Shown here: piece by piece, positions 17,150-48,100 of the stretch
Layout: each line of letters begins with the position of its first letter
Numbering within the stretch: position 1 is the stretch's first letter
Origin: Laetmonice hystrix
Taxonomy: Eukaryota
Length of the DNA: 64,000 nt
Direction of reading: 5' to 3'
NCBI GenBank assembly: GCA_965235115.1
Contig: OZ249445.1
Span: 10,354,001-10,418,000, forward strand
Notes under the pieces: generated by a model
What the model saw: the letters and a program-made list of their open reading frames with translations, nothing else
Databases searched by the model: none
What the model was told of the DNA's origin: nothing
Program-made: the position numbers and the translations under genes

Positions 17150-17612
17150 CATGGCCGTATTTAGGGGGGGGCTGAGGGGGCTGCAGCCCCCCCCCCCCAA
17201 CCAAAATCAAGTCAATTTTTTGTTCCTCTTGTATCAGTGAATGTTTGTATGACGAGGAGAATCCAAAATATACGCTGGTACATAACAGTCCAGCTTTAAC
17301 CCAGCAGGTCTAGGCCTAAAACTGTAAAAGTGTAAGCTAATCATGGGAAGCACCATGCCTCTCTTGAAATGCTTAATAGGGGGGCCCGGGGGGGCCTAAA
17401 CCCCGCTAGGTGAGTTCACCAGGCATTGACAAATCAGTCATTTTCTGTCCCAGGTGCCGGGAAATCGCATCTCCGGGCTTCCTAATTTCAAAATTTTCTG
17501 GGGGAGTACCCCCCGACCCCCTCCTTTTCGTTTACTCGCGCCTGCGGCGCTCGATGATGCGCGCCTACGGCGCTTGTCAGCCCCCCCTGAAACAATCCTG
17601 GCTACGGCCCTG
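17150..17612. mobile_element. MITE, CAKGGCCGTA ends, 5-bp target duplication
   Basis: catggccgta...tacggccctg; CATGT at 17145-17149 and 17613-17617. Confidence 0.8.
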
Positions 17613-18014
17613 CATGTATTGCTGGTTTTGTACCATAGACCGACCCCCGTGGATATGGCACCAATAGACCGACCGCGCCCCGACTGTATGGGTGTTATGT
17701 ATATCGGACTATGTATGCCGTACGTAGGGATGTATGTGTGTGTATGTATGTACAGTTGCTTCAGCTACCTAAAAGATCCGTGTGGACGTGATATGTGTTT
17801 GGCGGCGTTAGACTCCACACGTGACGTCACGGGTTAACAGAGAGCCGACGTCACGGCAATACACAACCGAGTGGAAACGACGACGACGACGACGAGAGGG
17901 CGCGGTGAAGGTGAGAAGGCGCGGATAACGACGACAACATGTAGTTGGACGTCGCCCAGAGAGTTATGTGGACATTGATGACCGAGGCTTCAGGTCGTCG
18001 TACCACGGTCACTC

Positions 18015-21100: not shown

Positions 21101-24100
21101 TTGTAAAGGACGACGTAGAGGTTGGTGGGTAGCGTTCGCCGTGACGATGACGACGATGACGACGACGACAGGTTCATCTTGGACGGAGGCGCCTCATTGA
21201 TCTTTTCCATGGAGCCCCGACCCTGCAGTTAAACAGAGCTACAGTTGTCGTCATGATAAATATGTAATCTTACAGGTTAGATATCCTGGGTGAGCTAGGC
21301 CTGAGATATCTGAGTCAAGGACTCACTCTGGTCTACGATGATGCGTCAGATCATCCTTTTGGTTCTTTAATATCAGATTACGGCATACTATGGTTATAGA
21401 CTCTCCTGTCGGTTAATTTGAAAACGGTTGAGTAGTACCGCATGATGCATTAATGGACATTTAGACTGCTTTCCATCATCCTAATGTATTGAAGTCCACT
21501 TACTCTAGTGTAGTTCCACTTACTTCATGCTGATATCTAATATATAACTATACAAATATACATCTACATAGTACATGTAGTATTGTAGATTCCACACGGC
21601 TGGCAGGTAGCACAGGTATAGTGTTATTACTACTACTTCACTAAGAGATCAGCTCTAGGTCATTCCGCATGGTTTCCATCAAACATGCAAGAAGCAGGGT
21701 GTGTGTGTGCATTTTCTTGTTAGGCAGTGAATAGCGACCTGTCTCGTCCCCGTGTCAAGTCAGTGTCTCTCTTATCATAACCTACAGGCAATTAAGTGTT
21801 TGCTTCTTCTTTTAGCTAGCTAGGTATATGAGGTGTTGTGTGTATTCTGTACGTGGGGTGCCTGTATTGGTATGTCTGTAACACTCCATTTGAAGTATAT
21901 GAACGGTCAACTTGAGCATGCGGTTATAACACACCTGCACGGTTTCTCTCCAACACCGTTTTTTCTCTCTCGCAAGCTTGTGAGGTAAACAGCTCTCTAA
22001 TCCATCTCTGGTGATTTCTACTACACCGCTACGTATAATATACAGTTTTTCCTCTGATAACAAGATGGGTTGCAAGCGATCACATGTATGTATAGAATAG
22101 AATGGAGTCTAGACAAACCATCAACCAATCATGGATATCGGACGGGTATCCAGGCACATTCTCCAGGCCGACAGTAAACTATGAGATAAGGACAGCATCA
22201 GACACGTCAGAGAGCGAGTACGTCTGACAGCACACACTTACATCGCGCTGCAACCGGGTGAGGGCATCCTCGGCCGCCTTTGTTTTTCTGTGTGGTATTT
22301 TGGCAGTCATTATTTTATCGGGAACTAAATTAGAATCTTCACGGCCATAGGGAGTAACTAATTGGGAATACTTTCAATGGATGTAAATTCATCTTAGGAA
22401 TTAGCCACCGCACATCCCCACCATTTATTTCCTTACCAAAGGGTACACTAATTACTTGGGACTGAGGGCACTGTTGGATGGCCACATACAAAGAAGAAGA
22501 AAAAAAAAGAAAAAAAGAAGGAACATAATGTAAGAAGGATATAAGAAGGATGAGGATGAGAGAAGATGACCACAGGGTGTCAAAACATTTAAGGCAGGAA
22601 ATGTCTCGGAATGGCTTATGGTAAATGGTATTGTTGAATGTACAAAGAAAGATATGTGTCCCCCAAATCAGTAGAAAGCTGACTAAAGAAATTTATGGGT
22701 TTTACTTCACAATAATGTGCATTATATATACATATATATAGGCCCCTATATATATCATATATATTATTTTATATACAAAAGAAAAGGAATCAATTTTCAA
22801 ACAATGACTGACCGGTGAACTCCCTCCGCGTGGGGACAGAGACTGGTTACTTTTGGGAGAATGGCTGTCGTAGGTATCCTCAATGTCGAGGGAGGTAGAC
22901 CGGTTCCAGAACTTGCTGCGCCGGGCGTACGCTGCAGTGGCCGAGGACGCACCTGGGGCAGGTACCAAGAGGACAATGTTGGTCAGTGAGCGCAGACAAA
23001 TACACCGCTCGCCCGACGGCCACTGACCTGTGCCGTAAAACACCGTTTTTACTGGCTCAGCCCACCACTTCCTCGGTTTTCAGAACCATTTGCAAGCACT
23101 TCTGATTTATGCAAAACTTTCATACATTCGATGATGATCTTATCTTCAATGTGGCAAAATTGCAAACCTTATCTTTTTTTCACATCGGTGAATAGAAAAA
23201 TGTCATCTCATAAATAACGGGAGTGAGCCAGGCTTGATAGAAAAAGTGAAATTGCAATTAACAATGCCAAGAATATTGTACATTCTCAGTCTGCACAAAC
23301 TTAAAATTTTTCAAACCAATTTAATACAATCTATGTCATCACTTATCCAGAAGAAACAGAATAGGTGTTATGTGCAGGGTATAGACCCAAATATAAAGTT
23401 ACATGGCCATGCGGGTTTGGAAGTCATGCGGGACTAACATGCACTGTGGTGGCGTTGGTGAGTTCTGGGAGAGCCGGGAGCAGAGCGGGGGTGGTAGACT
23501 TCCTCCGACAGGAGCCGAGAGCCTGGAAGTAAACCACAGAATGGTGGCGGGCGGCGGTGAGACCACAAGGTGGCAACTCAACGTGGCAACTCACAGCGAC
23601 TGGCAATACATGTATACATCTCTTCAAGGTGGCAACGCACACCCGGTGTCAACATACAACCTGACGTGGCAATATACACTTCAAGGTAGCAACTAAGACC
23701 AAGAGGCAATATGGCTTTTATCAAGTGGCTGAGTGTCAATATAGAACATAAATTGGTAACTGAGAATGGGTGGCAATAAACTAAAGTTGGCATTTAAAAA
23801 CGAATGGCTATATAAATCCTACAAGTAGGCTGTGACCTGAGGTGCGACATATAAAATGTATGTGCCCACATAAATAATTAAAAAAAACCACAGACACACG
23901 CGCAAAGAGTTTACGTTTCTACGTAGCACAAGTCCATTTATCCATCAATCAATATGTATGTACGCACAGAATTATATGCTCAAATGTATATATGGCTTAC
24001 ATAATATAGCTTTGTCCTTAAAGAGTCACTCCAACCAAGATTTCCACCAAAACACAAGAAAGGTATATACAAAAAAGAATTTTATCTTTGATTGAAAATA

Positions 24101-27100
24101 ATGCTTTGCACTTATTTTCAGAGAAATTTGCACCAAATGTGAGCAGGATAAAATTTGACGGGGCTTTAGTTGTGTTCGATAGATGATAATTGTGGTCCAG
24201 TAGATGGTTAAAGTCATTACCCATTGATAGTAATTCAAGTATTCAAACACTGGCTAGATTGCTAAATACGGTCTTCCCTGCAAGTGTACACTGTAATACA
24301 TAAATCTGTCTAGTGGATCGGGAACAGGGAGAGACAGAGAGAGAGAGAGAGAGAGACGGGGATCTACACAGAATGACGTCATAAATTATGTCCTAACATC
24401 CATGGACTCACCTCCAAAACAAGTATTAGTAAAGGAACTGCTTTTCTTCTTCGACGTCTCATCGATAGCATGCTGCTTGGGAGGGTCCGGAGTGTCCAGG
24501 GAAAAACTTTTCATGCGCATATTCAGCTTTTTCCGACGGCGATGAGGAGGACTTTGTGGTGCTGAAAAAAAGTACCATCGATCTGGTGGTCATTCTTGGT
24601 TCAACTCCTCATACTTCATACTGCTCCTACCTCAAACTTCCTATCATGAACTTGATACTTATAGAGGATGTAAATTTAGTCATCTGAACATACAGATCTG
24701 AATACTACACATATTAAATTCTTAACTGAGATGTGAATATAGAGTAGTGAATGAAATATTACCCAAGATTTTGTGTAAAACTAATTGTGTAAAACCCGAT
24801 CAGACTGCATCATACATTTGTCACCAAGGGATAAAAACGCCTTGCTGGCTCGGATCAAAAAACTATGCAGCCTTGTGGTATCAATGCTATTTTATGGGTA
24901 ACTTAACACTGGGAACAGCCTATTACAACACTGACTTAAAATCTAATTCATGCAAAAACATCAGTAGAAGTCATCACATCTATCTGGATTACACATCTAT
25001 GAATTTATGTTAAACACATACAGCTCTGAACATGTTTTATATAAAGATAATATGTTCACAAAACTGTAAAAAAGAAATATCAAATGCCCGTGCGCGCCAT
25101 CGTAGACGGGTGATCAGCACTTGAGTGGCCTGGTGACCTATCCGAGATGTCAGAAAGAATCATACGTGAAATGACCACGTTAAACGAAAGGTCATTAGTT
25201 AAGTCGCATACCAGTGTAACAAAAACACATCAAAACCACATCAAAATTATCCTATTCTCTGATGATATTACAAAGAAAGAACTCAAACTTGCATGGTAGC
25301 CATATCGTCAGCACGTATGGCCTATGTGCAGGTTTGATTCACAGGACATATATATAGTGACATCTAAACGACGTGCCACACGTGTATCCCCTGGATCCTA
25401 TCTAAAAATGGATGTCGTCAATTGGGGTCTCACAGTGACGTGCTGAAATTATAATTCATTTTTTAATCTTAAAAAAGTACCGGGTGTACAACAGTATTAT
25501 CATCCAATTGCATATGTGTGTGGCTCTCCACCTGCCTGCAAGCATGTGGACAGAACGGGGACCATGAGTATAGGTAGGGGTGAGGTAAACAGGTGTGTGA
25601 AGGACACTGACTGCCCAGAATATACAGGGCAGGTGTGTCTGTGACGTAAGGAAACTACAGCTAGAAATCTTATATTTACTACTGGTGGGTGACGGACAAC
25701 GACTGCCACCGACAACAGGTATTACAGGGGGATCATTACACACTGCTATCGGTTAAAGATTAAAACAACTCTCTCATCGTGATTACCTCAAAAAGTGATG
25801 ATAATCATGGTTTATATCCATCACAAAAGAATTATTTAGGTGTAATCAAAAGCAAATCTGAGGGGTTAAGTTGGTAAACAGTAAGAAGCAGGGAGGCCTA
25901 ATGTGCAGGGCGGTGAGCATCAATCGACCGTTGCATGGAGCACAGACGGCTATCAAGGCACATCTAGCACAACGGCACGTCTAATTACATTGCTCGGCCG
26001 CCATTACAGCATCGCGCGATACTTTGGATTCGCCCCACAAATGGCGATCTTGAGCCCCGCCACTCAGCGGCCGATCGCCGCCACTGGACCGTCGCCCGCT
26101 CGACGAGCGATGCGGTGAGCTACTCGACGAGCGAGTTCGCGACTGGGCCGCCGACTCCTGTTGGGGTTGTTGCTGAGATTGTTGTTGCTGTAGTTGTTGT
26201 TGTGAATGTGTGTCCGGGATAGTGATGAACTCATCAATGTTCTTCTTCAAATGAGATCGGGTCACGTGATCATAATCTGGAAAGTGCAAAGAAACATTTG
26301 AATAAACACGATTTTTATCTTCTTTTCACTTGATGGGAAGAGCAAGGGGTTACTATGGAAGGAACAATCCAAAATTATTTTTTTATAGTATAAATTTTTT
26401 CTATCAATTCACTTAATCGACAATTATAACATATAATTCCTGATGAATATATGTCCCTAAATATCTCATTTTGCATTTCTTACAACCGAAAATTGTGCTA
26501 CAATAATAACATTCCAATTCTTCTCCAATGCAGTTAGGCACCTTAAGTAATGAACTTACAAACAGAAGGGGTGTTGACTTGCAAAGGAATATAGCTTACT
26601 TGTATAGACGGATGTGCGAAAGCATTTCTGCTTTTCTATAATCAAGAACAGAACAAAATTTGTTACTACGCTATAAACGTGTTGTTGACCCACCCGGTTG
26701 GCGTCCCGTTACCTTGACAACACGTGTCGGTGCCGTCCTTAAAAAGTTGTCAAACACCGTGCAAATCTACCAGCAGGAGTAGGCAGGGTGTGTCTCAGCG
26801 AGTCTGAGAATAGTGTTACATCTTTACGTACAGAACTGACTGCGTGCAAAAATGACGAGTTATCAATGTAAAGTAAAGCAGTATATCAAGTGTAAGCAAC
26901 TATTTAGGCATAATACTTGGTGTTCTCTGGCGTCCAACCGGGACTCGGCATATGGAGCATTTGGAGAATTTAATAAACGACAATGTGTATTGTTTTTTTT
27001 TCAAAACGATAAGTGACATTTGGGGTGGGGTGGGGGGGGGGGGTCACTACGTCAGAAAACGTCAAGTATTTCAGTGACCTTGCCATTATCATACAGATTA

Positions 27101-30100
27101 TAACTATCAACTATTAAAAACGGACAATATAAATAGGCAAAATTAAACCTTTATTCAGGTTTGTAACGTTTCCAAGACTCAGGCATAAGTAATGAGAAGG
27201 TGTATAGACAGAAGCACTTGGATAGATAACGGTGAAGTAATAATTTAACTGGGTATTGACCAATGATCTCGGTTTACACTTAGTTCATAGAAAGGGCCTG
27301 GGTAAATACATCCAAAACTTAAATAAAATTCTGATATCAACATTACATACATTATCGAAGGAGAATTTTCGACTCGTATGTAAGATTCTCCGTCTCCAAG
27401 GCCAACTTGTGATTTCAGAATAAGGAGTGCGAATACTTATCGTTGTTTTTTAAGGAGGTGAATTCATGGGGGTCCATGACCATTGTTTTCTTCTCTCACT
27501 TTTTTCAACATTTCTGCGTTTTTACAACCCGTTGTGGGATTGGACTACATTGGATGAGGGACACTGAGTGCATCTGATGTGAGTGCTTTAAGAGGAATGT
27601 GAAGGTTGAAAGAACATCGACACAATGTGCAGGGACAACATCCCAGCTGAGTGCTCAAACACCTGCCGCCCTGCCGTCAAGCCATACATAACCATGACAA
27701 CAACTGGTCGGATTGAGACAGCAGCCTGCAGGAGGGATGGACACACTGGGAGTCACATGGCGGAATACAGTGGACACATCGAAACACTTAGACGACTGCA
27801 CACTTGTACTGGTCATCATTGTGGTGTTCTCCCGAGGATCGGGTGTCTTAGCGAACTATACCGTTTCCAATATAAACGATTGTCCCTCCATCCTGCACAC
27901 TCAGATTTCTGTATCCTGCGTACTCTATGCCATTATCAAATTTTGAGCATAGATTCAAGAATCTTCCTAGACTATAAAAAGGACACACAAAAGGACTCCT
28001 TTGTGTAGACGGGCACAATGGAGTTCTTTTGTGGACAAATGTTTGTGAAACTTGGCTCGTAATTGTGTATTTTAAACATATAAATCACGTCATAAAAAAG
28101 AGACTGGCCCTGCTCTCTAAGAGCTCGTAATCCTGGCAGAACCCCCAAAAGACGAGAAACTATTAAACTTCACGACAAACTTAGACTGTATTTATAATTG
28201 CCTTGTTGTTTTTCGGCCAGGTTTCCGTAGAGTTCCAGCCTCCGTTTTTCCCACGGTGCCATGGTCTCCACCTCCAGGGTGTTGCTACTCCGGCGGCGAA
28301 CCGAGATTGACGGGTCGCCCAGTGTCGGCTGGGTGTCGATCATCAACACCCGCTGTTGGGTACTTGGGCTCCGGTCCCCGTCACGTGGGGCCTGGAAGCG
28401 GGGCGTGGACTGGCCACCGGGACTGCGGTCACGACCCGAGTCGGAGGTCGTCCGTGGGGAGGTCTGACTGCTGCGCCGGACGTGCTGGGAGCCGGCGGAC
28501 GGCAGCATGTCGCCCTGGTCCCGGGGTCCCTCCCCGTGAACGACCCCTCGAGGCGAACTCTGGATCAGGGCCCGAGAGGAGCCCTGGTGGCGCAGCTGCC
28601 TGCCCGGACTTTTCTCCCGGTCACGATGGGAGTCCGACTTAGACCGGTCTCGGTGTGACTTGGGAGCGTCAGTGTGGGGCTGTTTTCCCTGAGACTCGCC
28701 CTGTCCACGATATGTGTCACTCGGTCGGCCATGACCTCGGTCTGATTGACCTGCTGACCTTAAAAGGTCGCGATCGGACTTCCCTTGTGCCCTTAACAAA
28801 TCTCTCTGACTTTTGCCCCGGTGTATTTCCGGTGTTCCGCGATATGTATCAGATTTAGTCCTATGGTGAGTTCCCTCTGGACCAGCCTTGGTCGTTCTGG
28901 TGGGCTCAGAAGGACCTCTGGGGGAGAGACCTCTCAAAGAGTCAGGCCTTCCGTGGTGCCGCACCCTTTCCCTGCTCCTGTCCCTATCATGTTCTCTATC
29001 ACGGTCTCTCTCCACTTCTACCTGACTCCTTGATATGTCCGGACCCTTGAGGCGAGCGGGCACCTTGTCAAGCTCAGAGTACCTGCGGTGCCGGTCAGGT
29101 TGCCTTGGGCTGTCGGTCTGCTGGGCGCGGTGTTGGACACTAGGACTTCTGTCCCGAGGAGAGTCAGGGAGGCTTCGCTGTGAATCGGATCCACTCTGGC
29201 CTCTGGGACTTTTGTCCCGCGGTGAATCGGATCCACTCTGGCCTCTGGGACTTTTGTCCCGCGGTGAATCGGATCCACTCTGGCCTCTGGGACTTCTATC
29301 CCGCGGTGAATCGGATCCACTCTGGCCTCTGGGACTTCTGTCTCGGGGTGAATCGGGGAGGTTTCTACGGTCCCTCGGGGTGTCTCCACGAGGTGACAGG
29401 CCTTTAGCTGGACTCTTGGGACTTTTGACGGGGGATTTACTGTCGTCCTGTTTTGACTGTTGCTGTTTTTGATAGAACTGCTGCTGCTGTTGCTGTTGTT
29501 GCAGCTGCTGGTAGTGCTGTTGATATCGACCTTCACAAAGCCCCGCTGTATCCTGCGTTTCTATCACTGTAAAGGTAGAAAATGAAGAAGCACTAACATC
29601 CTGATGATTATGTCAACCTAAAATATATCAACCTGAGATCCTAGATGGAAATTTTTTTTCTATGACTATTTTGTTCATATCTCTTTGAGTTTGCCTGCTG
29701 TTGATGACCTACCATTGACCTCCCTGTTGCTGTCCTGTGTATCACGGGGTTCAATGGGGGAGGTGGCCTGGAGGATGGCGTCCACGTCAATAGACACCTG
29801 TGGGTCGAGGGTGAAGTGGGCGCTGGCGCTGCGTCTCTCGGGCTGCCCTATGTAAAACATGGGGTCCCGGCGGCTCGACGACGACGTGGATGTCACCGCT
29901 ATACCATCCGAAGTGGGGTCTGAAAGAAGATTTGCCACAAATAAAATTACTTTTTGTACATTCAAATATAACTGTAACCCTCTCGACTTAAATGTCTTCC
30001 CAGGAATAACTCTATAACTGTCCTATCAATCGAGTTATTAAACGACAGATATTTCTGGAGTTGTATAAATATTAGTTCCCTTAAAGGCCGGGATTCGTTA

Positions 30101-33100
30101 CCACCTGATAACGTTGACTTCAGCTGACCTTGCTCCACTGGTTCAGGCCATTTTGAATAGGACATGCTGAGCTGTTACCTCAGTATTTCAGACGGTTCCA
30201 TGGCTGTGAATTATCATAGGGATTTCTGGACTTTGACATTTTATGCGCTAGGGAATAGGGCAGGTAAGTGTACAGGTACCGGTATATTTGAAGGTTTGTA
30301 CCAGCAAATATTGGCTACACTAAGAAAAAATATTTCTTTTACACTTTCCTGGAATGTGTTGTCCTAAAGAACTCAATTTAAGTTAATTTCTTAATGATAC
30401 AATCTCCTTAGCGCAATAGATACAGTTTCAGAAAGTAGATAGTAATTACACACGACACAATATAATGCATTCCGTGCAGTATTGCACAGAATACGCAATT
30501 ATTGGCTAAACGACATTCTAAACTTGTATTAAATGTAGAACAATATTTGTCTTTGTAAGTGCCCGTGACACTAGGCCCCAAAGCAACATTGGGTACCAAC
30601 AAAGACAAACGAGTGTACAGTCTGGGTAATGCAGAATCCCCTCACACCAATGATGGGATAGATGAGGGAAAGGGCATGTCCAACTCGCAGGCTGACATAT
30701 ACATGTATCATGTACAGTAACTACATCGAATAACGAGATTTTGAAAAACAACTCATGCCCTCGATATAATTCTTAAATAACTGATAGAAAATGGCATTAT
30801 ATAAAATTCCAATATAACTATGATTAAATAACACCATAAGCATGCCGGGGCATCAAATTGGAAAAGGGAATACAGGCAAATTGATAACATAATGATATGA
30901 GAAATAACAGTGCCTACCTAATCCGTAAACGTCTATGAAATAAAGAAAATACACAAACAGGATAAAATACATTTTAAGTAATATCGTTTGTTTACACCTA
31001 TGAAGCTGTTTCACTGAGGTCCACTAATACGGGCTACAAGCGAACCGGCAACCACATCTCCACAGGACATCGTCTCACAAAACAACGCCGTCTGGGATTC
31101 CCACCAAGTCACACCAAACTTCACCATGACTGCTAGAGGGTGTACTGTGACGTAGGGGGGCGTACTGGACGTACTGTGACGTAGCCAGCCATACGTGCCT
31201 TTGGTATCCTCAGTGATCGTACTGTGCACCGTTGCCTGCACGGGAATTTTCGACCTCTGCGCTAGAGCGTCCTGCCCCTGACCTTGACCCGCTCTGACCT
31301 GACAATATTTTTGGATGTTGGCCTGGCCCAGGCAGGGGTCATAGTCTGGGTCAAGGTCATGCTGGATGGTGGTGAATGCAGAGGAAGTGAGCTGCAGCGA
31401 CAGTCGTTTCATACGAGGCATGTTGCGCATGCTCTGTGCAGTCAACGCTGAGGAGAGGAAAACAATGGATGAACACGCGCGCATGCGTGTGTGTGCACGT
31501 GTGTGTGTGTGAAACATGTCAATCAGTGAATCATCCAAGTGTATCACACAGGCCTACGTCCAACTTTCATCAGGTCACACATGCAATTTGTAATCTCAAG
31601 TTTCTATATACTGTGGACAGCATTTTAAAAAAGTAACCTATACAACAATTAGCTGATCTAAAAACGTCTCCTATCGTATAACCGATACAACCGATACAAA
31701 GCTTTTGCAATTTTTCAGATTTGTTATAAAAGTGGGTGAGTGATCAATTCACTTTAATTGAACTTTTAATCAGTCTTTTAATCACACATTTTGGCAGAGC
31801 TAAATTGGTACTACGGAAATATTGTGGAGTGAAACCAAATATGAATGTACAAAACTAATATGAATTCGTTCACTTTAAAGAGATGTAGCAACAGCTAGGG
31901 TGCACTTAACAGGGTTCCCACTAAGGCTGCACACTCAACGATATCGAACCTCATAAAAGCAGGGAAAGAGTTTGTTCCGATAGAGAGGGCAAAACATAAT
32001 TAGACCAAGCATGTAAATGTTGGTAGTATCATCACATGATGCCAGCGAAATCTCCACCTGATCTATCCAATTTGTGTGCACCCTGTTGTAGGTCCTACGG
32101 ATAAGCGATCATGCAACATGGATCACAGTTGAATTGTGCCAGATGTTTGGTGAACTGACGGCGTTTGTTCTAACCCGTTCTAACGGCACTCCAAGACAAC
32201 AGTGCTTGGTCTGTATAAGCGGCACTCTCTGTATATTATGCACAACTGAAATCATAGGCTGACTGCTTGGTGGTATATGAAGACTGCAGTGAGTTAATGA
32301 CCGCCACTATCGGGTCGTGCAGCCTTGACTGTGGGAGTCTGAGAACTACGGAATGCCTTCTGACTTCTGGCTCTTACCATCATTTACCTCAGACGCCCCC
32401 AGTTTTCACGATCTTTTGAAATATTTACATTATTACTTCAGAAATATAGGTAAGGAAGTACCTGAATAGGTGGTTTGGGGTCCATCTGCCACATTATAAT
32501 ATAATGAAACCAAGAAAGAATAACCACATAATCTGCCATTTGTACATTTTGTTATTGGCGTGTGCCTGGGCAAAGGTGAGCAATGGCGGCGCTAGAGAGG
32601 CAGGGGGGGATTTCCCCCTGAAATATTGCTTGCTCCCTGTACTTCTCGCTGATATTCCAAAAGCTTCCAAAGACATACGGTTTGCCCTTCTAAATTTCTT
32701 TGTGCCTCCGTTGTCTCCCTGAATGATTAAATCTGGCGCCGCCACTGAAAGCGAGTTGATTATTTCAGACCATTTCATAAATCCAATTAGAGATGTGTTT
32801 CGAACGTACATTTATGTTAGAGTTATACATTTATAATATATATTGAAGGTTGCGCACCTGTTTTTGGGTGTTCGTACTGGCCTTCTGAGACGGCCGTCCA
32901 GGAGTGGGCCTTGGTCTGGGGGGCCAACTGCTGTTGCTGCTCCTCATCATCATCGTAATATGGCGAGTCCATGGAGAGGCTGCGGCCCTCCATCAATAGA
33001 AGTAATCGTTTGTGTTTGGCCTTCATCACCTTCCTCGGAACGCCAGGACTGGTCTCGATCACCGACGGCTGGCGGCTGACACCCGCCGACACTGCAGCAC

Positions 33101-36100
33101 CACAATACGTACGTTCATATCTAATCAATCACCGACCAATCCACAACCATTACAATTACTTACACACAACTTATTCCCTCTCTATGTCTTTTCAGCTAAA
33201 TTTAGTAACATCCGAACTCGGGATTCTCTGCAAAGTCGGTCATACTTTATTTTCTAAATAACTCCAATGTAAGTTGAAACTGGAGCCCCCCCCCCTGCAG
33301 GGGCTGCAGGGCAGACATTCCTCAAACTCTAAAGACTAATACTAACACTAACCCTAACACAAACCCATCACTAATCCTAAAACCGAAAGAAAATACCCCT
33401 AATCCATACACGAATTCATTCTAGGCAAAATAATGGTAGAAAAAGATAAATCCGTAGGGGGTTCGAACTAGCGTCCTATTGATTCAAGCGTGAGGAATGT
33501 CTGCCTTGTGCAAAAATCCAGGAATTGGAGGGGGGTTGAGTACAGGATGATTACCTGGGGTGGCACCGCCGGTGTCACCACCGGCACCGGCCGGTGTGGT
33601 GGCCTGAGGCGGGGTGAAGGCCGGTTCCTTGGAAACCTCCTTCCACACGTTTTCTTTCATGGCCTCCCGCTCCCACTTCTCATGCTCAGACGCCGACCCG
33701 TCCTCTGTGTCACACGACATGCTCCGCTGGTAACGCAGCATCCTGGGTCCGTGAGCTTTTGTTAGAAACAGACAGCGGATTACGGTCAGCTCACAAACAC
33801 CGCCAACAACTCACCAGGTTCTGAAACAAACCAGGCCTCGCGGCGAAAATTCAGTAAGAGGGGGATAAACGGGGAGACAACACACAAACTCATTGAGTGG
33901 AAGGTGGAGAATGGGCTAGAAAGGAAACACAGGAGAAGTGGGGTGATTTGTGGAGATGGTCGCCGGGTCCTTGGGTCGACTGGAACCGGACCCATTGTTG
34001 GCGTGGAGACAGACCACCTTCAATTACTCAACCACAAACTGATGCCAGGTGGTGTGAACTGAGTCCAAATGGTCCAAATCTGAATGCAATATTTCTGATC
34101 ATTCTAATTTAAACATACTTAAACATCGTGGAAACATTTAGCCTGGAGGTGAGCTGTCTGCTACATAATATATACTGTTGTATTTCTGTGTTTCTTGATG
34201 TTTCCCTAGTAACTGGCCCATATTTACCATGTTAGAGATCGTTCATTTCTATACTAACTTGGTATCTAATAATGTTGAAAATTGATTGTAACTTTTAGGA
34301 ACTTCAATTCAACTTTTTTCAATTGAATCAGCTATCAAATGTCACTGAAACAATCACCCTCAAATAAAGCAGAAATGATGCAAATAAAGTAGAACATAGG
34401 TTTACAATATGAACAGATGTTGGGTTGCTGTGCTTAGTCAACGTTTCAATGAGGAGAGGATTGACCATTCGCTCAGCAGATCACTATTATAAAGCCTAAA
34501 AAGCAGGTTTTTTTGGGTGCACGTCTAAAAATGAGACGGCTTACAAGCATTCTAGAGTCGTTTTTGGTATATATATATATATGACCCCGTCGACAAAACA
34601 TGCCTATTTTCTTAGATAACCATGATCTGAAGACTTCCTGGCTGTCCGGTGGAAGGGACACCCTATTCACATGAAGGACCCTGTATATGGTTAAAATATA
34701 CGGTTTAACAAGACGAGTGATCACAGCTTTCATTTAGTATTATCTTTAACCAAACAAGACAGGAGCAGCAGCAACCCAAATCAATGACATGACATTGCAA
34801 CTTCGTGAATTCATAGAGATGATAGAAATTACTGGGAAAGATTCGTCCTTTTAGAATGAGGAGAGCTAACTGCAGCATACACCGCACAGAGATTGAGTTC
34901 TAATAAAATATTGATATAATTTATAGATTATATCATCTCAGGAATGAAGCCGCACACATTCCACTGATGGTGATAAACATAACAAGACGGACTAAAACTG
35001 GACAATCAAGGTGGACCTATCTACATATGACACAATATTCAATATATATATGTACAAACATATATTTTGGGGCACGATTCACTTACACTGACCGTTGCTG
35101 GATTACGTCACCTTACAAAATGATATATCTCTGGTAATTTCATGATTGGTTCTAACTTGGAGGAACAATTAGACCTCTATAGATTCTACTATTCCTGCAA
35201 GGTTCCAAGAATAATTTTGAAGTGGAATACATCTTTTTGCATGATCAGTAGTTGTGTTTAGTTTGTGAGAATCCGTCAGCGGTGTAAAGTGAGCCTGAAG
35301 CTGTTGGTGATAGGGTGGGGAGGGGACAATGAATGCAGTAAGCCATCTACAAACGGAAGCATGCCTTCTCTGTCCCTCGACGCCTGTGTCATGGCGGTGA
35401 AACTGTGTGAGCGCTCGGCCATGTCGTTGTCGCCGTCCATGTCCAGTTTTTGTTGTTCATGTGAGTGAGCATAGGGCGTGTCCAGGGACTGTGACTTGGT
35501 CTCCTGCATAAATCGTACCCGTCGGTCCTTGGCCGTCCTCACTACAGCTGGGAGTCAGCCAATCACAGTGAAAGAGCTCTTATATCGGCGACTCCGGTGA
35601 CAAAAAGACATACACACACATGCTAATATATGGACACACACATTGGGTCAGCCCTGACGGTCTCAACCCCGCCTTGCCGTGTCAAGATGAAACTATCGTC
35701 GCTCAATCAGTCAATGATTGCATAATCATTTGACTGGTAACAACATGAAGACATGTATACGTTAGAGAAAAGTAATAACAAATCAATCAGTCATTCTGAT
35801 TGAGGCATGACAATGATTGTGGTTATTTATTACTTCACTTAACACTGACAGCCTCCCACGTGTGCGATCAACTTTAATATGCAAGTACATAAGTGTCAAT
35901 GTGCGCATCATATGGAACAAGGCTTTGTGCTCACGTGCATTTTGGTTTGTATGTAAACAACACTAAGCATAGAGAAACAAATGTATGATAAAAGTAATCA
36001 CATCCAGTATAAAATGATTGCCTCAATAGACAAAAAGGAAAGACCCAAATAATAAGTTATACTGGCTGATCAGCGCGTCAGCCTGCTGATTCAGCAACAT

Positions 36101-39100
36101 AGGCTTAACGTAAACCACCAATTAAAGCAAACATATGTACAGGGTTTGTTTCAGATGATCTAATGTAAAAAATCAAATAGAAATTCATAACTCTTTACAT
36201 GTTACTGCAAAGATGCTGAATATTAATCTTTGACTTTGTATAAATATCCATGAAAGATGCATTGATGAGACGACAAATTATATTAATTATCAAGAGACTT
36301 CCCCAAAATTAGAAATCGTGCAAAAGTCGGAGAGAGTCGAGAGAATATAAAGAGCCATACTCGTAAGCCCGCAGGTAGAATTCAAGCCTTGCAAGGAAAA
36401 AAATAATGATAGAGGAATTAATTACAAACTACGCCGAGCTGGTTTGTAATCTATGATCCTATCTGATCGATGTGAAAACCCCAACCGACTTACTTGCCGA
36501 GACAAATCCTGGATCTTTTTTATACGACTCGACGGCCATGATACAAGCAAGTATTGAGGTTGTGGCATTTGAACACATGTACATGTACGTTTTGTATCTA
36601 ACATTACATTGTCTACCCGTGGACACCTTTGGAAGCACGGGCCCAGTTTTCTAACTGGCTGGTCTACTGCAACCAGCCAGAAGCAATAAGTTTAAGCTTA
36701 AAAACAGAACCCTGTTTCGCCGATCTCCCAGTCAGGTGTGCCCCTCGACACTACGAGCCTCCCTTCCCAACCGAGCAGGTCGATGAGGTTGGGAGAACTG
36801 TGTGAAGTCAGGAGAGGGCCGGGGGTACCCCCACTACACTCTGGGTCCCCAAGACGGAACTAGATTTTTATAACAAGGCTGGGGCGCAAATCTAAAAGGG
36901 TCTTCTGTAATCTGACGTAAGAAAAAAGTTCTATTGTCTCGAGTAAATAAGGGCGACTTGAGAAGCGAGGACGAATACTAGTGTTCTATGCAAATGACGC
37001 AGAAAACATGCATAGATACATATTATTTACTTGTCAGACGGACAGCCATATGGGCCGACCTTTAAGAAGTGCTATAACATGATACTAATAATCTCCTTCC
37101 AGCAGAACCAGTTTGAAGGGTTCGCCTTCACCAAGACAGTCATCACGTCAACGGTTTCTCATTACGTACTTCATTAGTTTCTATCTTTTCATGACAGAGG
37201 GACGCCCAGACGCTGGGCTACATGCTCCACTTGTAATGGGGCGAAATAGGAAATGAAGAACCATGCCCAAAGGCCACCATGTGCATACAGAATAAATGAA
37301 TACCTACTTCTACGTCAATTTGAGGATTTGAGAAAACTGGTCGCAGTTCAAGACAAAGCAGAGTTATATTGTACAAAAGGAGCAGCCTTTGAAATCACTA
37401 GTTCCACCCCTGTTTCAATAGTATGAAAAGAAGGGAAAAGTCGCATACCACAGATGTAATTAAAAGAATATTATATGATGACATTTGCCTTCCGTGTACG
37501 GTTGGTGTGAGTTGAGCCAGGGTTCGGCAGCCATGACCTCTCCACTGTCAGTGTACGAGTAGGGTTCCTCTAGTGACTGGCTCCGAGACTTCAGCCCACG
37601 CAAACTTCGCCACCCTGACAACGTGCCAACTCAACCCTTAACCACAGCCAATTAATGTTAATAAATGTCCGAAAAACCGGGGGGTGCTGTAAATACGTAC
37701 AATTAACCGAGGTTAGGGGAAGTGTAAAACACAAACTCCAACCTCGAGGTGAATACAGATTGCCGTTGGAACCACACTGGCTTTACTATCTATACCCACC
37801 ACGTGTTGTAATGGTTGAAAGACAATTAGAGTATACATTCCACGTGTTATACCACTGTTAGCCCTCTACCTACCACGTATTTTAGTTCGGTTTATCTGGC
37901 TATCATATCACAATGGCTGTCATAAGACTGACCATAAAGCCTTGTTGTACTTGGTAATTTTCATATTATGACCAACCTGAGAATTATTTCGAAAGTGTTT
38001 CCGTATCTGTACCCTCAGATGGGATCCAGGGGGCGGGGGTCTGCCTAAACCCCTAATGGTCAATGACAAGTGTTTGTTTATTTCAAACATTAAAGACCCC
38101 CCCCCCCCCCCCCCACCACCACTACCACCACCATTCATGCACAACCTTTGGCAGGGTGCACCTTGAGTTCCTACGATCGACACTAGGGGGCAATAGTGTG
38201 TCTCATCTGCAGGATGCGGTCACGGATCTCCCAACTAATCTACAGGAGCAGAGCGAGTCGGGCAGGACGCTGGACTACTGGCAATGACGTTATAGACCTG
38301 GATACTTCGTCTTTATATTAGGTGCGTTTTACAAGCTGTCATTAACTTGTATCGTTAAAGCCAATGCATTTTCAATGGGGAATTTAACGCACGACAAGAT
38401 CGTTGTGAAACGCACCCCTGGCAGAGCCCCGTTTTTCCGACGTCAGTGTCTTGCATACAATTAATACGAAATCATAACTGAAGTTTGGTCACAAACCTTC
38501 ACTTTCAATGCTATCATGAAAAGTGTCCTACTACTATGTCGTAGTAGGCCCCTAAATATAAATCCTGCAATCCAAACACTGGCAGATAGGCTTACCTAAA
38601 TAAGACGAACAAAACCAATATCTCAATATTGTAAGGGAGAACTAGCTTCCGTAACTATTAGGCCTACCCCTAAAACACATTCACTCGACCCATCCTCATC
38701 CGAGGGGTAAAACCACTTTGACCTATTACAACATCTTATGCTTCTTTTCGATGAAAGATCTTTGGCCTTGACTGAAACTTACGCAAAACGTTGAGAATTA
38801 CATGGTCGACATGATGGGTTGATGAGCGGCTGTTGACCTTCTCTAACAGTGCTTCATTCCCTGCCTGACTCGCCGTATCATCATGTACTAAGGACTGGTA
38901 GGCGGAAAGGATAATGGCCATATGATTTGGATCACCCGTCAGGCTACAGCCTGAACCCGGCACCAGCCGCCTAACCTGGCTATACGTCAGTCACGTGTAG
39001 TGCCAGCCAGGAGGCCCCAGTTTTTGCCCCGCCCTCCCCCGCTAAAATAACCCCGCTTGACGTCAGAGCAGGGCCACGGCCGGATCAGGTGGCCCACCGG

Positions 39101-42100: not shown

Positions 42101-45100
42101 TGTTGCCCGAGGGCAATGTCAACAAGACCCAGAAAATCAGGAATCTCTATCCGACAGCCTCAGTGCCATATCTAACAGAGTCTAGAGCATGACCCAGGCA
42201 TACATCCTGGCCATAATAGTCGAGCAGCTATCTAAATATCTTTAAATATGGTCACTTGTCAACGTCCTATATGATGCATTTAGGCAAATTTCAATGTGAC
42301 GGGTCTCTCATCACGAAGGCGTATAAAGGTAGTCAAAATTGTGCTGCCAATCTAAGCCTACACTACTTAAATGTATCTTAATTATCTTTTTTTCCCCATT
42401 TAAGAAAACACTAGTTAGGCCTGAACGACCAGAACATATTTCACAACTGATAACAAATCACTGCCTTAGTCTGCAGGTCAATGTCTCATACAACGTCAGA
42501 GCTGTGTGTTGAAATCAAATGTGTCTCGTTTTCCCTCGTTCAGATTTCCATTTCGAGATCGCATGCGGATTGTAAAAAACTGGTAAACCTCTTGGGTAAA
42601 TTCTACCTTCTTATCAGTGCTTCTCTTGTTGTATATAACAAATGAGATGCACCAAAATGTATGGGACGCCGACATGACATTATGTGTAGATACGTATGAT
42701 AAGCCAACCCTTCTAGAGTATAGCAGCCGGAACTGCACAGTTTTACACGGAACATCTGGACATACAAGGACGCTAGGAATGAACAATTCGAGAGTCGACT
42801 GGAACTTCTATCCGAGTCTGAGCCTAGCTAAAATAGGGGGTATGCGTCGTTCCTATGATTATACCCAAAATGGGGGAAATCAGCTCAATGGTGAGCATTC
42901 AGCTATCGCATAAAATACACCAAGGGCATATATGCAGCTGTATCCTTCCAAATATTTCCATTAGGGTAGTCCAGCAGCATACCATCCCGTCCAACTCAAA
43001 CCCAGGCATACAGAGACATGGGGACGACCACCAGCCTTTACAACCACAGTCAGACTCCATCTTTCCCCAGTGCCTCCGTTCCTTCGCTCAATTCAAAGCA
43101 GATACTCCACCATCGGTCGCCTTGGCTTGGGTGCCTGGCAATGGACCACAATGGTTTTCTCGGCCAGAGGCCGCCTGACAGCAACAGTGGGCATCCACTT
43201 GTGGTGGATCCTCGTCGCCTTTCGGTCAGGGAGGCCAAAATGACAAGAACTCTTGCCGTGGCAGCAGCAACAACAGCTTCTCAGGGAGCACCCCACGGTA
43301 ATCGTCACGTCTTCTTGTTATTGTTCTTGTTGATGAGAGACGCATGATAGTTCTCAAACACTTCCGGGGTGTGGCACGGACAAGGACACCTCTGTGATGA
43401 CGTGTCCGACGAGTCGGACATTGGCCAGTTAAAGGGAGAGTCGTAGTCCATGTATTCTGGAACGGAAACCAGGAACGCAATGTTTAGTTAAGAAAACGAT
43501 TGTGAAGGGAGAACATAATATTCTGCATTGAAAAACTGTTTAATCTTTAACTATAGGCGATACAAAAGATCTTTACGTAAAATATATGCACCGTAGCAGA
43601 TGTGTTTTATTTTGCATACTTTGGAAATTCTTAAGTGCACCTTAGTCGAGTTGGCTGTAGAATCGATTAATCGTTACATGTAACAGAATTATTCAACACA
43701 ACTTGGTAGTTCGTCACAAGGAAAACGACGACAGGAAGAACATCGAGAAGGGTAAGAAAGGTGAACATTGAGAGTTGGTACTTGATCCCAGTGATTGACA
43801 ACAATAGTAGAAAACAACACCTAAAGGAGACGGTCAGCAGAAAGTCAGATTACAAGTATAGGGAGGTGGAAATGTATATTAGCAAATGCACTCAAATTAC
43901 GTCATCTTTCTTGTGCCAATTTCGTCACGTAGTTTCTTATTCGGAGGCGATCATAAAGAGAACTTATTTTTAAATCTCTCTACGTTACGAACACTTGGAT
44001 CTCAACTTGGAAGGGAAGAACTGCGTGTGCATTTGCAAATATGACACTATATGTGTTACGTGTATATATATAATGTATATATTATATATATGACACACAC
44101 CCCACGCAAACCCGCACTCGGGTACATCGGGTACACTCTATAAGGTCAGATGTCAGGACCTAACGTGTTCGTGCTGGGACCTCGGTATATAGTATATCAC
44201 AGCTTTGGTCTATCACACGTGCGTGGTCGGAGAACCCCCACTTCTAGCCCTTTCACGATCAGTGGCGAGGAGCAGGACGTGGGTCGGTCAGGTGGACACA
44301 GCGGAGGGATGTCTTCATGGAAGTCACCGAGGTTATGAAAGGGCTACAAGTCCCGACATAGCGTCGTTATGGTAACAAACGGACGATTGGTGGAGCGATA
44401 TCCCCGAGGAACTCCCTCGGGTAGACTAGAGTTAGGCACAAGTCCTTCTGTTTACTTTCAACTGAAGGACTATGGAATTTTCTTTCTCTTAATAAGGCCG
44501 AATACAGGTTTTGTCTTTACAATTAGTATCTCTTGGCTTTGAACATAATATATACGATCATTATCAGATATATTGCAATCAAAGCTTCTTCACACATGGT
44601 CCACTAGTCCTCCGTTTGCACCAAAGGAATGTTATGAAAAGGCACGAAAATGGCAAGCGCAACTTGAAGTGTTGGAAGTGTTATGGGATGTACCAAATGC
44701 TGGACACATCGAGAAAGAGAGGTTAGTTAGAAACAGGTGAACGATCTAATACACTTATAAAAGCTGATGAAAAACACGTATCAAAGATAACGGGAACGTT
44801 CAAGAGAAATGAGTAGTAGCAATTTTATCAACCTACCTACTAGTATTTCATAACGGTTGTTAGGCTACTGCATTCCGTGGTTGACATTTGTGTGGTATGG
44901 GCAATATGCAGCAAAATCACCGCATCAAATTATAAAAAGGTAAAAATCAACCCGAAGTCATGCTGGAAGCCAAGCGTTTAGTCGACACAGTCTCGTAGCT
45001 GTTACATATTTGCTTGCTTGACGCATATCGGAATGTTGAAGGCATTGTTTTTGTAAATGTGTAAAGGCGGACTCGGCATCCATTGCTGGGTAAAACTTGA

Positions 45101-48100
45101 TTTAGCCATCATGCCGGGTCAGATCCTGAGAAAAGGTACATGATTTTAGTGAATGCAAAGACCGCTTCTTCGGTGTGTTCCCTCATCGTTGAAGAGAGCT
45201 GGAAGAAAAGGTCATGAAATAGGCCCTCATACTGTAACAAATTCTACCGAGACAGTCAGCCCCAATAAAGTCATGCACATTCCATCGCCGGCATGATCAA
45301 CCTGGATTCTCTGTGGAATCAAAACCTGTGTTACAGTGGGCGCAATCGTCATTAAAAAAAACCGCCATACGAACAGAAAACTACTGTGAACTGTACGAGA
45401 ATGCACCTGACGGGTATATATGCAGTGGGCAATGCTGACACTATAAGTCAGCCACACTAACCACCTCACTACAGGTCATCACGCATGCCAACGGCTCGCA
45501 TTACAACTGACAGGGAAACCATGTCAGAGTCGTAGACGGTAAAAATACCTGATACCTGTTAAAATCACAGAACGGCCGACTACAGAAAAATTAACGGACT
45601 AACGGGGAATACATGACTGTCACATGCACTGCTATCCATCACTCGACGGCACTTACTCAACAGTACAAGACAAGCAATGGTACAATCCATGTCATGCTCT
45701 ATGTAACTCATCAACGTTATTATGAATGCATAATCAAAAGGGTACCAGAAGTTAGTAAGCATATTCACCACAAGGCTGATACTGTTTTCTGTTTTTCTTT
45801 CATGACGGTATCTCCAGAACATTGATGCTGAGCGTGGTTACTTGCTGAACCACAAACACACTTGGTTTACTGCCAGTTATCGGCGTTAACGTCCTGCCAT
45901 ATTCATGATTACTTCAAATACCAGCGAGCTTCTAAGTAACCATGAACCTAAGCTCACTCCCTACAACGCCACTTCAAGTAAAGACAAACAAATTCATTTG
46001 CGGAATTCAAAAATAAAAGTTCTGTACTCCACAAACAATTTTCCTACCGTTGCTTTCTGGCGAGAGGAGGGAAAATGCCTTCATGGTATCCAAAATTCCC
46101 TGCCTGCAATTTTGGACTAACCCGAATCCCAAGGCTTTCCTTCAAGGTTCTATCCTACTAAAACCAAATGGGGGAAAATCCTGGCCACGGCACATTCAAG
46201 CTGGCCAACGGCTTGCTTTGGTATGAAATTGGCATAGATGTCCTACGTACCTGACGAAGGACTGGAGCTCCGAGAGTTACTCCGGACGTTTAGGACATTA
46301 TCACTGTTTGGGGCCTGGGCGGTCCTCATACAACAAGCATGCCCGTGGGACCCACCAGCAAACTTGGACTGACGCGGGAGGTCGGCAGCACACTTAAGCA
46401 AGCTGTACACGGGGTCAATCTCCTCCGCTAGAGTCACAACGAACAAGAAAAAAAGAGAAAACAGAATTCAAACCTTGGTGGCAGATTACATCTTAGCTGG
46501 TTAGTAAGACAAATGATGGGAAGGGGAAATCCCTGGAATCTGGAGGCGGTGCAATAATAAATTGGGTGGTGGAGGTCACTACGGAAGCTGGGTCCGGGGG
46601 GGGGGGGGGGGGCAGAGCACAGAGAAGACCACAGTACCTTGATTTGTTGCCCCACAAAGGCTTACAGAATGGAAAATCACTGTGAATGGTTTCTATCTTC
46701 CTCACCCACAGTGATAGGTCCAAGTTCCTGAATGTTCTAGTACAACCATTTTAATTGTAAACTGACCTATGCAACAGATTGCTCTTCATTAAGGGCAATT
46801 TCTAAAAACATAATTGCAGAAATGAAAACAACCTACTTTCAAAGATCATACTTCAATACTGGTCACACTACTTTGGAAAATTTGTCAAGCACTACACAAT
46901 CAATGGGCAAAACTTCAATGCACAGGTCAGATCTTCCCTCTTCTCTGCATGGAATTTTCGGATCCCAACGGTGGCCAGATGTGACGTAGACACTCTGACT
47001 TCTACACGATTCGTCAACATACCAACGGAGCACGGGGTAATGCAGATGCAGGAATTCACTGAAAATGTTGGGACGGTGGAATAGAAATGGGAGGGCAATG
47101 CATGTTGGTTGTCGGGGAGGTACAGGTGTTATGTTTTAGTGCGTGTCTGGTGATAAGCCCTGGTGATCCTGGTCACTCGGTATGAAATATGGAGTGCAGT
47201 CACCTTCACCAACACGTACAGTTCTCAGGAGCGATAAGCGTAAAGCTCTAATGGTAGGCTCTCTCTTGGTCCTTTCGGAATGGATCTTCAGAGAAAACCT
47301 CGGACGCTCCCATTTCCATGTCATGGCCCATGTCGTTTTCGGAGCCTGACCAGGACCGTCCTGTCGGACGCCGCATGGACATGGCGTCTCTGAGAGTGGT
47401 GAACACGGGGTCCATGTCACCCACTTCTGGAGGGGAAACACAAGCTCAGCTCATTCATCAGCTCCGCCTCTATGTACAGTAGTACACCAGCCGCCTGCGC
47501 TACCTACCGCCCTATACTCAACTTTGAACGGGAGGAGGGGGTGGGGGCAGACTTGGGCAAGCACGCATTGGCCTTTCTCCTATGTGACAGTGTAACAGGC
47601 CTACTAAAAATTCCAATCTCTTTCCCTTCATCCGGCGCTTACCGATTCACCAAGGGATACTCGCGTGTTTAATGAGGTTAATAGATCAAGCTGGTCTCAT
47701 ATCAACTGACCAGACTGTCTGATTTTAGACAATGAGCGACTTGAATGAAGGCGCCCTGCATGGACGTATACTGTTTGTCTTCTTCCAAAATCATACGTTT
47801 AAAGATTAAGTTCCCACTGCGAACTATGTTCTTCACACTATTATTAATTATTTGTGTCAAGTTATTGAATATACCCTTCATGTCATCAGGAATACCTCTT
47901 ACCGACTTCCATATGGCACGATACTGAGTCACTCTTCCTGTAAATAAGGCGTCAACAACTGGTGTCACACATATAAACTTGCGTGTGTACACGTCTATAG
48001 GCCCATATACCGCATAATCATAATAACAGAACTTAAAATCCCATTTCTTACGATACGAAACACAACTATTAGCAAACATGTTTCCCTGAATCCCTTTGCA

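Follow-up and report, generated by a model that had tools for sequence, protein, structure and literature searches.

The stretch analysed here, called the window below, is a piece of 64,000 nucleotides (nt) from Laetmonice hystrix (contig OZ249445.1 of assembly GCA_965235115.1, positions 10,354,001 to 10,418,000), and all coordinates are positions within it. On its minus strand we have outlined, by a splice-aware scan and hand inspection, a gene that sequence comparison identifies as the lophotrochozoan orthologue of the arthropod Stac-like gene (Dstac), of which the window covers the 3′ two-thirds. The part of the gene that encodes the linker is occupied by an array of conserved exons, several of which carry one short serine motif. 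The original prediction had counted about 14 segments opening in phase 1 between the exons at 49827 and 22952. The phases hold and the count is 13 conserved segments, of which 11 are symmetric phase 1-to-1 exons (E46.4, E37.6, E35.5, E33.7, E33.0, E31.4, E29.8, the giant exon, E26.6, E26.2 and E24.5); in the remaining two, at 47.4k and 43.3k, the frame is closed by a stop codon, which a diverged relative shares. The orthologous locus of this relative spans 49 kilobases (kb) on a contig of the ENA assembly ERZ25767047 and was assembled by chained exact-protein look-ups. Two further assemblies, L010 (GCA_029979845.1) and L013, were also compared. The exons from E49.8 to E22.9 are as follows.

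E49.8, 49827..49911, minus strand: YSRQSSLKRVLKRKDSKETPSDGEPAIE; 85 nt, phase 0 to 1, with AG acceptor and GT donor conserved in the relative.
E47.4, 47248..47426, minus strand: opens in phase 1; MDPVFTTLRDAMSMRRP, with MDPVFTTLR; acceptor score 4.6; peptide conserved in the relative.
E46.4, 46251..46427, minus strand: 177 nt (204 nt in the relative), phase 1 to 1; U-motif-like EEIDPVYSLLKCAADLPR, ending in SSSPSS; conserved splice sites; matches nemertean and mollusc orthologues.
E43.3, 43305..43456, minus strand: opens in phase 1; ends with CPCPCHTPEVFENYHASLINKNNNKKT (also HTPEVFENYHASLINKNNNKKT) and then a stop.
E37.6, 37489..37614, minus strand: copy exon with LKSRSQSLEEPYSYT; 126 nt, phase 1 to 1; GC donor GAAG|GCAAAT. 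The relative has RSQSLEAPYPYT at the collinear place, with 234 nt and the donor GAAG|GCAATT.
E35.5, 35365..35547, minus strand: copy exon with AKDRRVRFMQETKSQSLDTPY and AERSHSFTA; 183 nt, phase 1 to 1; GC donor AAG|GCATGC, found in three species; 82% nt identity to the relative.
E33.7, 33555..33755, minus strand: LRYQRSMSCDTED and EHEKWEREAMKENVWK; 201 nt in both species, phase 1 to 1; AAAG acceptor and GT donor conserved; also in L010 and L013.
E33.0, 32858..33091, minus strand: copy exon with KAKHKRLLLLMEGRSLSMDSPYY and TKAHSWTAV; 234 nt (222 nt in the relative, 76% nt identity), phase 1 to 1; also in L010 and L013.
E31.4, 31283..31447, minus strand: PRMKRLSLQLTSSAFTTIQHDLDPDYDPC; 165 nt, phase 1 to 1; strong acceptor and conserved donor GTCAAG|GTCAGG; 85% nt identity to the relative.
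E29.8, 29713..29919, minus strand: RRDPMFYIGQPERRSASAHFTLDPQVSIDVDAILQATSP; 207 nt, phase 1 to 1; not a copy of the motif exon; 82% nt identity to the relative and partly conserved in L010.
Giant low-complexity exon, 28202..29566, minus strand: 1365 nt (1881 nt in the relative), phase 1 to 1; ends with VRRRSSNTLEVETMAPWEKRRLELYGNLAEKQQ; acceptor and GC donor (AACAAG|GCAATT) conserved.
E26.6 micro-exon, 26600..26635, minus strand: KQKCFRTSVYT; 36 nt, phase 1 to 1; 88% nt identity, with AG and GTAAG sites in both species.
E26.2, 25989..26276, minus strand: YDHVTRSHLKKNI, with RRSSG and RHLWGESK; 288 nt (264 nt in the relative, 50% amino-acid identity), phase 1 to 1; conserved acceptor and CAAT|GTAA donor.
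E24.5, ancestral cassette exon, 24412..24561, minus strand: PPHRRRKKLNMRMKSFSLDTPDPPKQHAIDETSKKKSSSFTNTCFG; 150 nt, phase 1 to 1; 94% amino-acid identity to the relative.
E22.9, 22813..22952, minus strand: AAYARRSKFWNRSTSLDIED; 140 nt, phase 1 to 0; found in every orthologue isoform read.

The nine motif-bearing peptides on which the original prediction was built are all located on the minus strand where it had quoted them, and the second motif that it placed 22–28 residues after the first is found at spacings of 22, 24 and 28 residues (distances run from residue 2 of the first motif as quoted to the first residue of the second). The core pattern [KR]S.S[LMCIVF][DE] occurs six times on the minus strand, always between 22.9k and 37.6k, compared with about 1.06 per strand per 64 kb in block shuffles. 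In the exon peptides six occurrences were observed, whereas 5000 composition-preserving shuffles gave 0.06 on average and never more than 2; these statistics are generous, because the pattern was picked after the data had been seen. We further compared pairwise local alignments of the exon peptides with composition-preserving shuffles as a test of paralogy. The highest score was obtained for E35.5 and E33.0 (z = 8.9), followed by E37.6 and E35.5 (z = 6.1), E35.5 and E24.5 (z = 4.3), E37.6 and E33.0 (z = 4.2), and E33.0 and E24.5 (z = 3.0), and exons without the motif gave z values of about 0. On these comparisons E37.6, E35.5, E33.0 and E24.5 are clear paralogues of one ancestral linker exon, and it is for these four that the proposed serial duplication stands. 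Their alignment has a common layout, which consists of a basic/hydrophobic lead-in, [KR]SxS-hydrophobic-[DE]-x-P-[YDE], an acidic or Gln-rich spacer and [KR]xxS[FW][TS]. The similarity of E33.7, E31.4 and E22.9 to the copies is marginal (z = 2.3 to 2.9). E31.4 may be a degenerate copy; the statistics do not back this assignment (z = 2.3 with E24.5), and a profile of the copies failed to detect E31.4. Another reading frame, at about 46084 on the minus strand and just downstream of E46.4, encodes DTMKAFSLLSPESNGRK, with E = 0.075 against the canonical-exon profile and no counterpart found in the relative, and may be either a decayed copy or a chance match.

The comparison with the relative also bears on whether these segments are exons at all. 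The splice-site scores are weak for E37.6, E35.5, E33.7 and E33.0, and the window sequence alone left these four unsettled. When the window is aligned with the relative by blastn, only discrete collinear islands align, each of them a candidate exon, and the introns are unalignable; tblastn further recovers the larger part of the giant reading frame as well as E47.4, E37.6 and E26.2. In both species the acceptors (AG) and donors (GT or GC) are homologous. In each species the length of every one of the 11 internal exons is divisible by three, and 8 of the 11 differ in length between the two. The proportion of synonymous differences (pS) ranges from 0.45 to 1.0, near saturation, compared with 0.03 to 0.39 for nonsynonymous differences (pN), and dN/dS is 0.07–0.25 where it can be estimated. 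Among individual exons, pN and pS are 0.17 and 0.47 for E46.4, and 0.107 and 0.66 for E35.5; pN is 0.034 for E24.5, and dN/dS is 0.16 for both E33.0 and E29.8. The reading frame of E35.5 was found in seven further clusters from other assemblies, across which KSQSLDTPY is invariant and the second site ERS[HN]SFTAI nearly so (the exceptions are ERSHSLPGI and AARSNSFTAI). The extra copies recur in unchanged order in three further assemblies. L010 and L013 both keep the order E46.4, E43.3, E35.5, E33.7, E33.0, to which L010 adds E29.8 and the giant exon, and L013 adds a weak E37.6-like copy (RRSQSWEEPD, E = 0.044) at the matching position. The conservation of reading frame, phase and motif that had been proposed as a check at orthologous loci is thus found as exon islands with homologous splice sites and frame-keeping lengths. 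From these comparisons, the segments are coding exons with a function and did not arise as reading frames by chance. Since several species conserve the array, the first observation was an understatement.

One member of the array is ancient. Across 37 distinct orthologue segments, drawn from insects, crustaceans, molluscs, nemerteans and brachiopods, the sequence RRxKLNxRMKS[FL]SLDxP[ED] of the exon corresponding to E24.5 hardly varies. Among 148 orthologues, 34 proteins have no canonical copy, 108 have one and six have two. In the oyster Crassostrea virginica, isoform X2 contains the ancestral exon and isoforms X3 and X4 do not; in the scallop Ylistrum, X1 has it and X2 does not, and it is missing from Pinctada. 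The ancestral exon is therefore a cassette in annotated isoforms of orthologues (oyster, scallop and insect). A second ancient copy of the core lies in the exon just before the first SH3 domain and reads NRSTSLDIED here, ASSLE[IL]ED in molluscs and NIRMSSVELPD in insects. The extra copies are absent from the 148 annotated orthologues and from a 60-kb locus of the nemertean Tubulanus; since this locus holds the canonical copy alone, the array is a lineage-specific expansion. A comparable amplification is seen in the brachiopod Lingula anatina, where LOC106174122 (isoforms X2 and X8) has a linker with three clear RMKS-type copies plus a weaker HSQSLTD segment, in X2 and not in X8, and several motif copies stand together in single annotated proteins. 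The Lingula amplification is probably independent of the annelid array, because the RMKS lead-in remains canonical in its copies, which show neither the P-Y nor the second-site features seen in the annelid ones.

The exons on either side of the linker array define the gene to which it belongs.

E52.6, 52530..52712, minus strand: IELLSPKQNG and MWKKAFKSLK; ends in phase 0; assigned from splice sites and tblastn matches to orthologues.
Tandem SH3 exons, 21222-21065 (acceptor uncertain), 20726-20675 and 18826-18689, minus strand: 52–83% tblastn identity to the SH3 pair of orthologues.
Last coding exon, 18122-18015, minus strand: ends with PLKYLHEI and then a stop.

E52.6 is the first Stac-like exon inside the window, and the F-BAR exons lie upstream of the window. 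A search with the SH3 exon recovers full-length relatives, Stac-like orthologues including arthropod Stacl among them, and the closest named protein is from the annelid Owenia fusiformis. When orthologues from Lineus, Tubulanus and Haliotis were compared with the window by tblastn, the matches fell on E52.6, E46.4, E24.5 and the SH3 exons only; E22.9 was aligned by eye to the orthologue segment with ASSLE[IL]ED. A search with the Tubulanus orthologue retrieves two kinds of protein, arthropod Stacl with C1 and SH3 domains, and nemertean, mollusc and brachiopod forms with FCH/F-BAR and SH3 domains and no C1. The arthropod members carry the names Stacl or "SH3 and cysteine-rich domain-containing protein", and some of the nemertean, mollusc and brachiopod orthologues are annotated as nostrin-like. 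Two adjacent C-terminal SH3 domains are present. In orthologues they are annotated as PF00018, PF14604, PF07653 and PF26085 (SH3_20), and a single SH3 exon searched alone against Pfam gives a sub-threshold SH3_2 match only.

A C1 (PF00130) profile built from 36 arthropod Stacl segments found no significant match in the window or the relative's locus, whichever frame was read. None of the lophotrochozoan orthologues listed, which come from molluscs, nemerteans and a brachiopod, carries PF00130 either, and arthropod Stacl keeps it, a pattern that looks like domain loss in Lophotrochozoa. The gene is best described as an F-BAR/SH3 Stac-like orthologue, not a canonical "SH3 and cysteine-rich" STAC, because it has no C1 domain. 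The name STAC in the original prediction is, on this evidence, correct as an orthogroup label, and the domain that defines the family name is missing. The linker does contain a U-motif-like element DPV[FY]xxL[KR], represented by EEIDPVYSLLKCAADLPR in E46.4 and MDPVFTTLR in E47.4, both conserved in the relative; the segment in E47.4 is nearer to the vertebrate DPVFETLR than that in E46.4. In vertebrate STAC proteins the linker is disordered and carries the U-motif, 22 residues that suppress Ca2+-dependent inactivation (PMC8258685). The predicted protein is accordingly composed of an F-BAR region (encoded upstream of the window), the DPVY segment, a long disordered linker and the tandem SH3 domains. 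It shares the C-terminal SH3 pair, the disordered linker and the DPV[FY]xxL[KR] element with the L-type Ca2+ channel adaptors STAC1-3 of vertebrates and Dstac of Drosophila. It differs from them in that the window and the listed lophotrochozoan orthologues lack C1, that the orthologues have an N-terminal FCH/F-BAR region and that the linker here is enlarged by at least 11 lineage-specific exons.

We then consider how the array may be spliced. Exon skipping would cost no reading frame, because all the internal exons are symmetric. Three of the 11 internal linker exons (E37.6, E35.5 and the giant exon) have GC donors that are conserved in two or three species. GC-AG introns usually make up about 1% of introns, far below this fraction, and GC donors are typical of regulated exons. 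One more conserved in-phase GC site, at 31199, lies in the reading frame downstream of the GT donor of E31.4. Symmetric phases, conserved GC donors, several weak acceptors and the cassette behavior of the ancestral exon elsewhere are indirect signs that suggest regulated inclusion. Contigs of run X4, whose type is ambiguous, place a single 186-nt contig on 32500-37800; it is intronic, and none falls on the four copy exons. X4 also holds 64% of the words from the 3′ end of the gene, largely explained by a repeat resembling a short interspersed nuclear element (SINE) at 17150-17613, and because this repeat accounts for these words the run speaks neither for nor against expression. The repeat lies just downstream of the stop codon, is 94–98% identical to at least 630 candidate genome copies and can mislead word-based run searches. 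A role for Rbfox was considered from the donor GCAUGC of E35.5, found in both species, and dropped, as GCATG occurs 4 and 6 times around the array exons compared with about 5 expected.

The motif itself gives further indications. Around the second serine, all copies agree at four positions (basic at −3, serine at −2, hydrophobic at +1, acidic at +2), and the second site reads basic-x-x-S-aromatic. Both sites fit basophilic kinases that recognize R-x-x-S-hydrophobic, and their separation of about 25 residues could allow them to bind a 14-3-3 dimer. The context of T286 in CaMKII is R-Q-E-T-V-D, which the core of the motif resembles.

Taken together, these results lead us to favor, with a probability of roughly 0.55, a reading in which the linker of this lophotrochozoan Stac-like protein has been expanded by symmetric exons, three to five of which derive from one ancient cassette and supply optional phospho-modules whose use is set by splicing. 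The linker has grown in this lineage by at least 11 symmetric phase 1-to-1 exons, and three to five of them would have arisen by tandem duplication of one ancient cassette exon. The ancestral exon encodes a two-part motif, in which the lead-in and [KR]-S-x-S-hydrophobic-[DE]-x-P are followed, about 22–28 residues on, by [KR]-x-x-S-[FW]-T. The exons would act as optional cassettes that are included in combination rather than singly, and each copy would add a module with two R-x-x-S-hydrophobic sites of the basophilic-kinase type. Since each optional copy would contribute one module, splicing would decide how many phospho-modules separate the U-motif, the modulator of the Ca2+ channel, from the SH3 pair, which binds the channel. 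A more specific and rather speculative version, to which we give distinctly less weight, is a splicing rheostat in which the count of weak-donor cassettes tunes Ca2+-dependent feedback on L-type channels in neurons or muscle through CaMKII-like modules, possibly bidentate for 14-3-3. The brachiopod amplification hints that module copy number itself may be under selection.

Several points weigh against this reading. E33.7, E31.4 and E22.9 have just the short core in common with the other copies. A profile built from 37 canonical segments of other species detects E24.5 (E = 1e-16) and E35.5 (E = 0.04), and the other copies are not significant. Because the canonical profile barely detects the copies, their descent from E24.5 rests on pairwise and architectural similarity; on that similarity it appears well supported for three copies and plausible for the rest. 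The sequencing runs listed for a 10-kb stretch of the array and for the 3′ end of the gene include none recorded as RNA, and phosphorylation, the identity of the kinase and effects on the channel are all inferred from sequence. By inspection, the motif does not match the canonical 14-3-3 mode I motif, as the proline lies at +4 from the second serine and not at +2.

The strongest of the alternatives, in our view still unlikely, is that all linker exons are constitutive, so that the protein has a fixed linker of about 1100 residues with six motif copies and no regulatory splicing. It would agree with the purifying selection and the kept frame of every exon, and with the joint presence of several copies in single Lingula proteins, and skipping in this species is a deduction from sequence. 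It is at odds with the skipping of the ancestral exon in annotated isoforms of several orthologues, with the three conserved GC donors and the several weak acceptors that have been kept across species, and with a symmetry of all exons that makes skipping free of frame cost.

Somewhat less probable again is that the cassettes are real and the motif is a constitutive docking site, for calmodulin, the membrane, a channel loop or a trafficking factor, so that additional copies raise avidity. The best conserved part of the canonical exon, beyond the serines, is the basic/hydrophobic lead-in RRKKLNxRM, which would suit such a site, and a review of STAC proteins is silent on phosphorylation (PMC8258685). 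In the diverged copies, however, it is the basic residue at −3, both serines, the hydrophobic +1 and the acidic +2 that are retained while the lead-in varies freely, which fits recognition by a kinase.

The original prediction had also raised a mutually exclusive array comparable to that of Dscam, in which competing RNA pairings would allow one copy per transcript. The array does share tandem exon duplication and paralogous exons in one phase with Dscam exons 4, 6 and 9, 14-3-3 xi and Mhc. It differs from them in several respects. The copies are 126, 183, 201, 234 and 150 nt long, and these lengths differ between species, whereas exons of mutually exclusive clusters are of near-equal length; the copies are separated by unrelated exons (E31.4, E29.8, the giant exon, E26.6 and E26.2); and any combination of exons would remain in frame. 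The docking and selector complementarity that had been suggested as a check was not found: in an exact-match scan of both species, a crude test that short or G-U-rich pairings could escape, no k-mer from the introns alongside the exons has complements at a larger number of exon flanks than is seen in reversed controls. By blastn with the relative, no conserved intronic islands are found beyond the exons and a few edge bases. Lingula, moreover, shows several motif copies in one annotated protein. Because the exon lengths are unequal and a docking or selector signal was not found, we regard mutually exclusive splicing as very improbable. Least probable of all is that the motif segments are chance frames or decaying pseudo-exons made similar by Ser/Arg-rich composition, a view to which only the weak splice-site scores of E37.6, E35.5, E33.7 and E33.0 lend anything and which is effectively refuted by discrete islands conserved in four assemblies despite saturated synonymous sites and unalignable introns, by a dN/dS of 0.07–0.18 where estimable, by indels that are always multiples of three and by shuffles that give 0.06 motifs compared with the six observed.

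For the preferred reading, that of optional cassettes included in combination, a comparable system is the PEVK region of titin, an array of symmetric cassette exons in a disordered region that has grown by exon duplication. Repeated phase-symmetric exons, short modules in a disordered spacer and a lineage-specific number of modules are found in both, and differential inclusion would be expected in both. The present array differs in being small, in having modules with a specific two-site motif rather than a compositional repeat and in being known from sequence alone. Tandem-duplicated cassette-exon arrays in disordered linkers are already known, and so is the Stac-like family. The 2021 review of STAC proteins describes the linker as poorly conserved and reports neither phosphorylation or a linker phospho-motif nor an exon array (PMC8258685). 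STAC proteins govern the inactivation of L-type Ca2+ channels and excitation-contraction coupling, and of their parts the linker is understood least. The comparisons here show the nearly invariant RRxKLNxRMKS[FL]SLDxP on an optional exon of protostome Stac-like linkers, and the multiplication of the motif exon in one lineage, with copies kept under selection. This near-invariance and selected multiplication mark the motif out as functionally important. The array would supply natural proteins with anything from 0 to n modules, in which the role of the motif can be probed, and its conserved GC donors make it handy for the study of regulated splicing of duplicated exons outside model organisms.

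The two phase-1 segments that end in stops belong to a different class. In both species the frame of E47.4 closes with a stop, and an in-phase donor is lacking. E47.4 was considered as a mutually exclusive partner of E46.4 and ruled out; it can be no simple partner of this kind, because of the stop and the lack of an in-phase donor. E43.3 is extremely conserved; its conserved block is 88% identical to the relative at the nt level, and all eight differences, as read by eye from the alignment, are at third codon positions. Its ending KKT-stop is also found in the relative and in L010, and L013 retains the core CPCHTPEV. Use of GTGAC as a donor would give phase 2 and break the frame. E43.3 may be an alternative terminal exon that would yield an isoform without SH3 domains. 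A scan for poly(A) hexamers found none within 2.5 kb after E43.3 in the window and a single ATTAAA after E47.4, which offers no support for terminal exons.

The giant exon is conserved unevenly. Only its C-terminal end (RRRSSNTLEV, PWEKRRLELYGN and AEKQQ) is well conserved in the relative, and positions 29176-29356 consist of a 42-nt tandem repeat (4.3 units, 95% matching) that encodes SPRDRSPRGQSGSD. When its reading frame was used in a protein search, low-complexity candidates flooded the search and nothing came back.

The relative's assembly carries the locus twice, on ctg37849 (L005) and ctg38269 (L006), with near-identical exon islands, and the two contigs are probably unpurged haplotypes. 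In the window, a short high-copy repeat lies at about 33385-33561, in the intron between E33.7 and E33.0, where contigs of DNA run X1 break and their word depth climbs from about 62 to about 3900.

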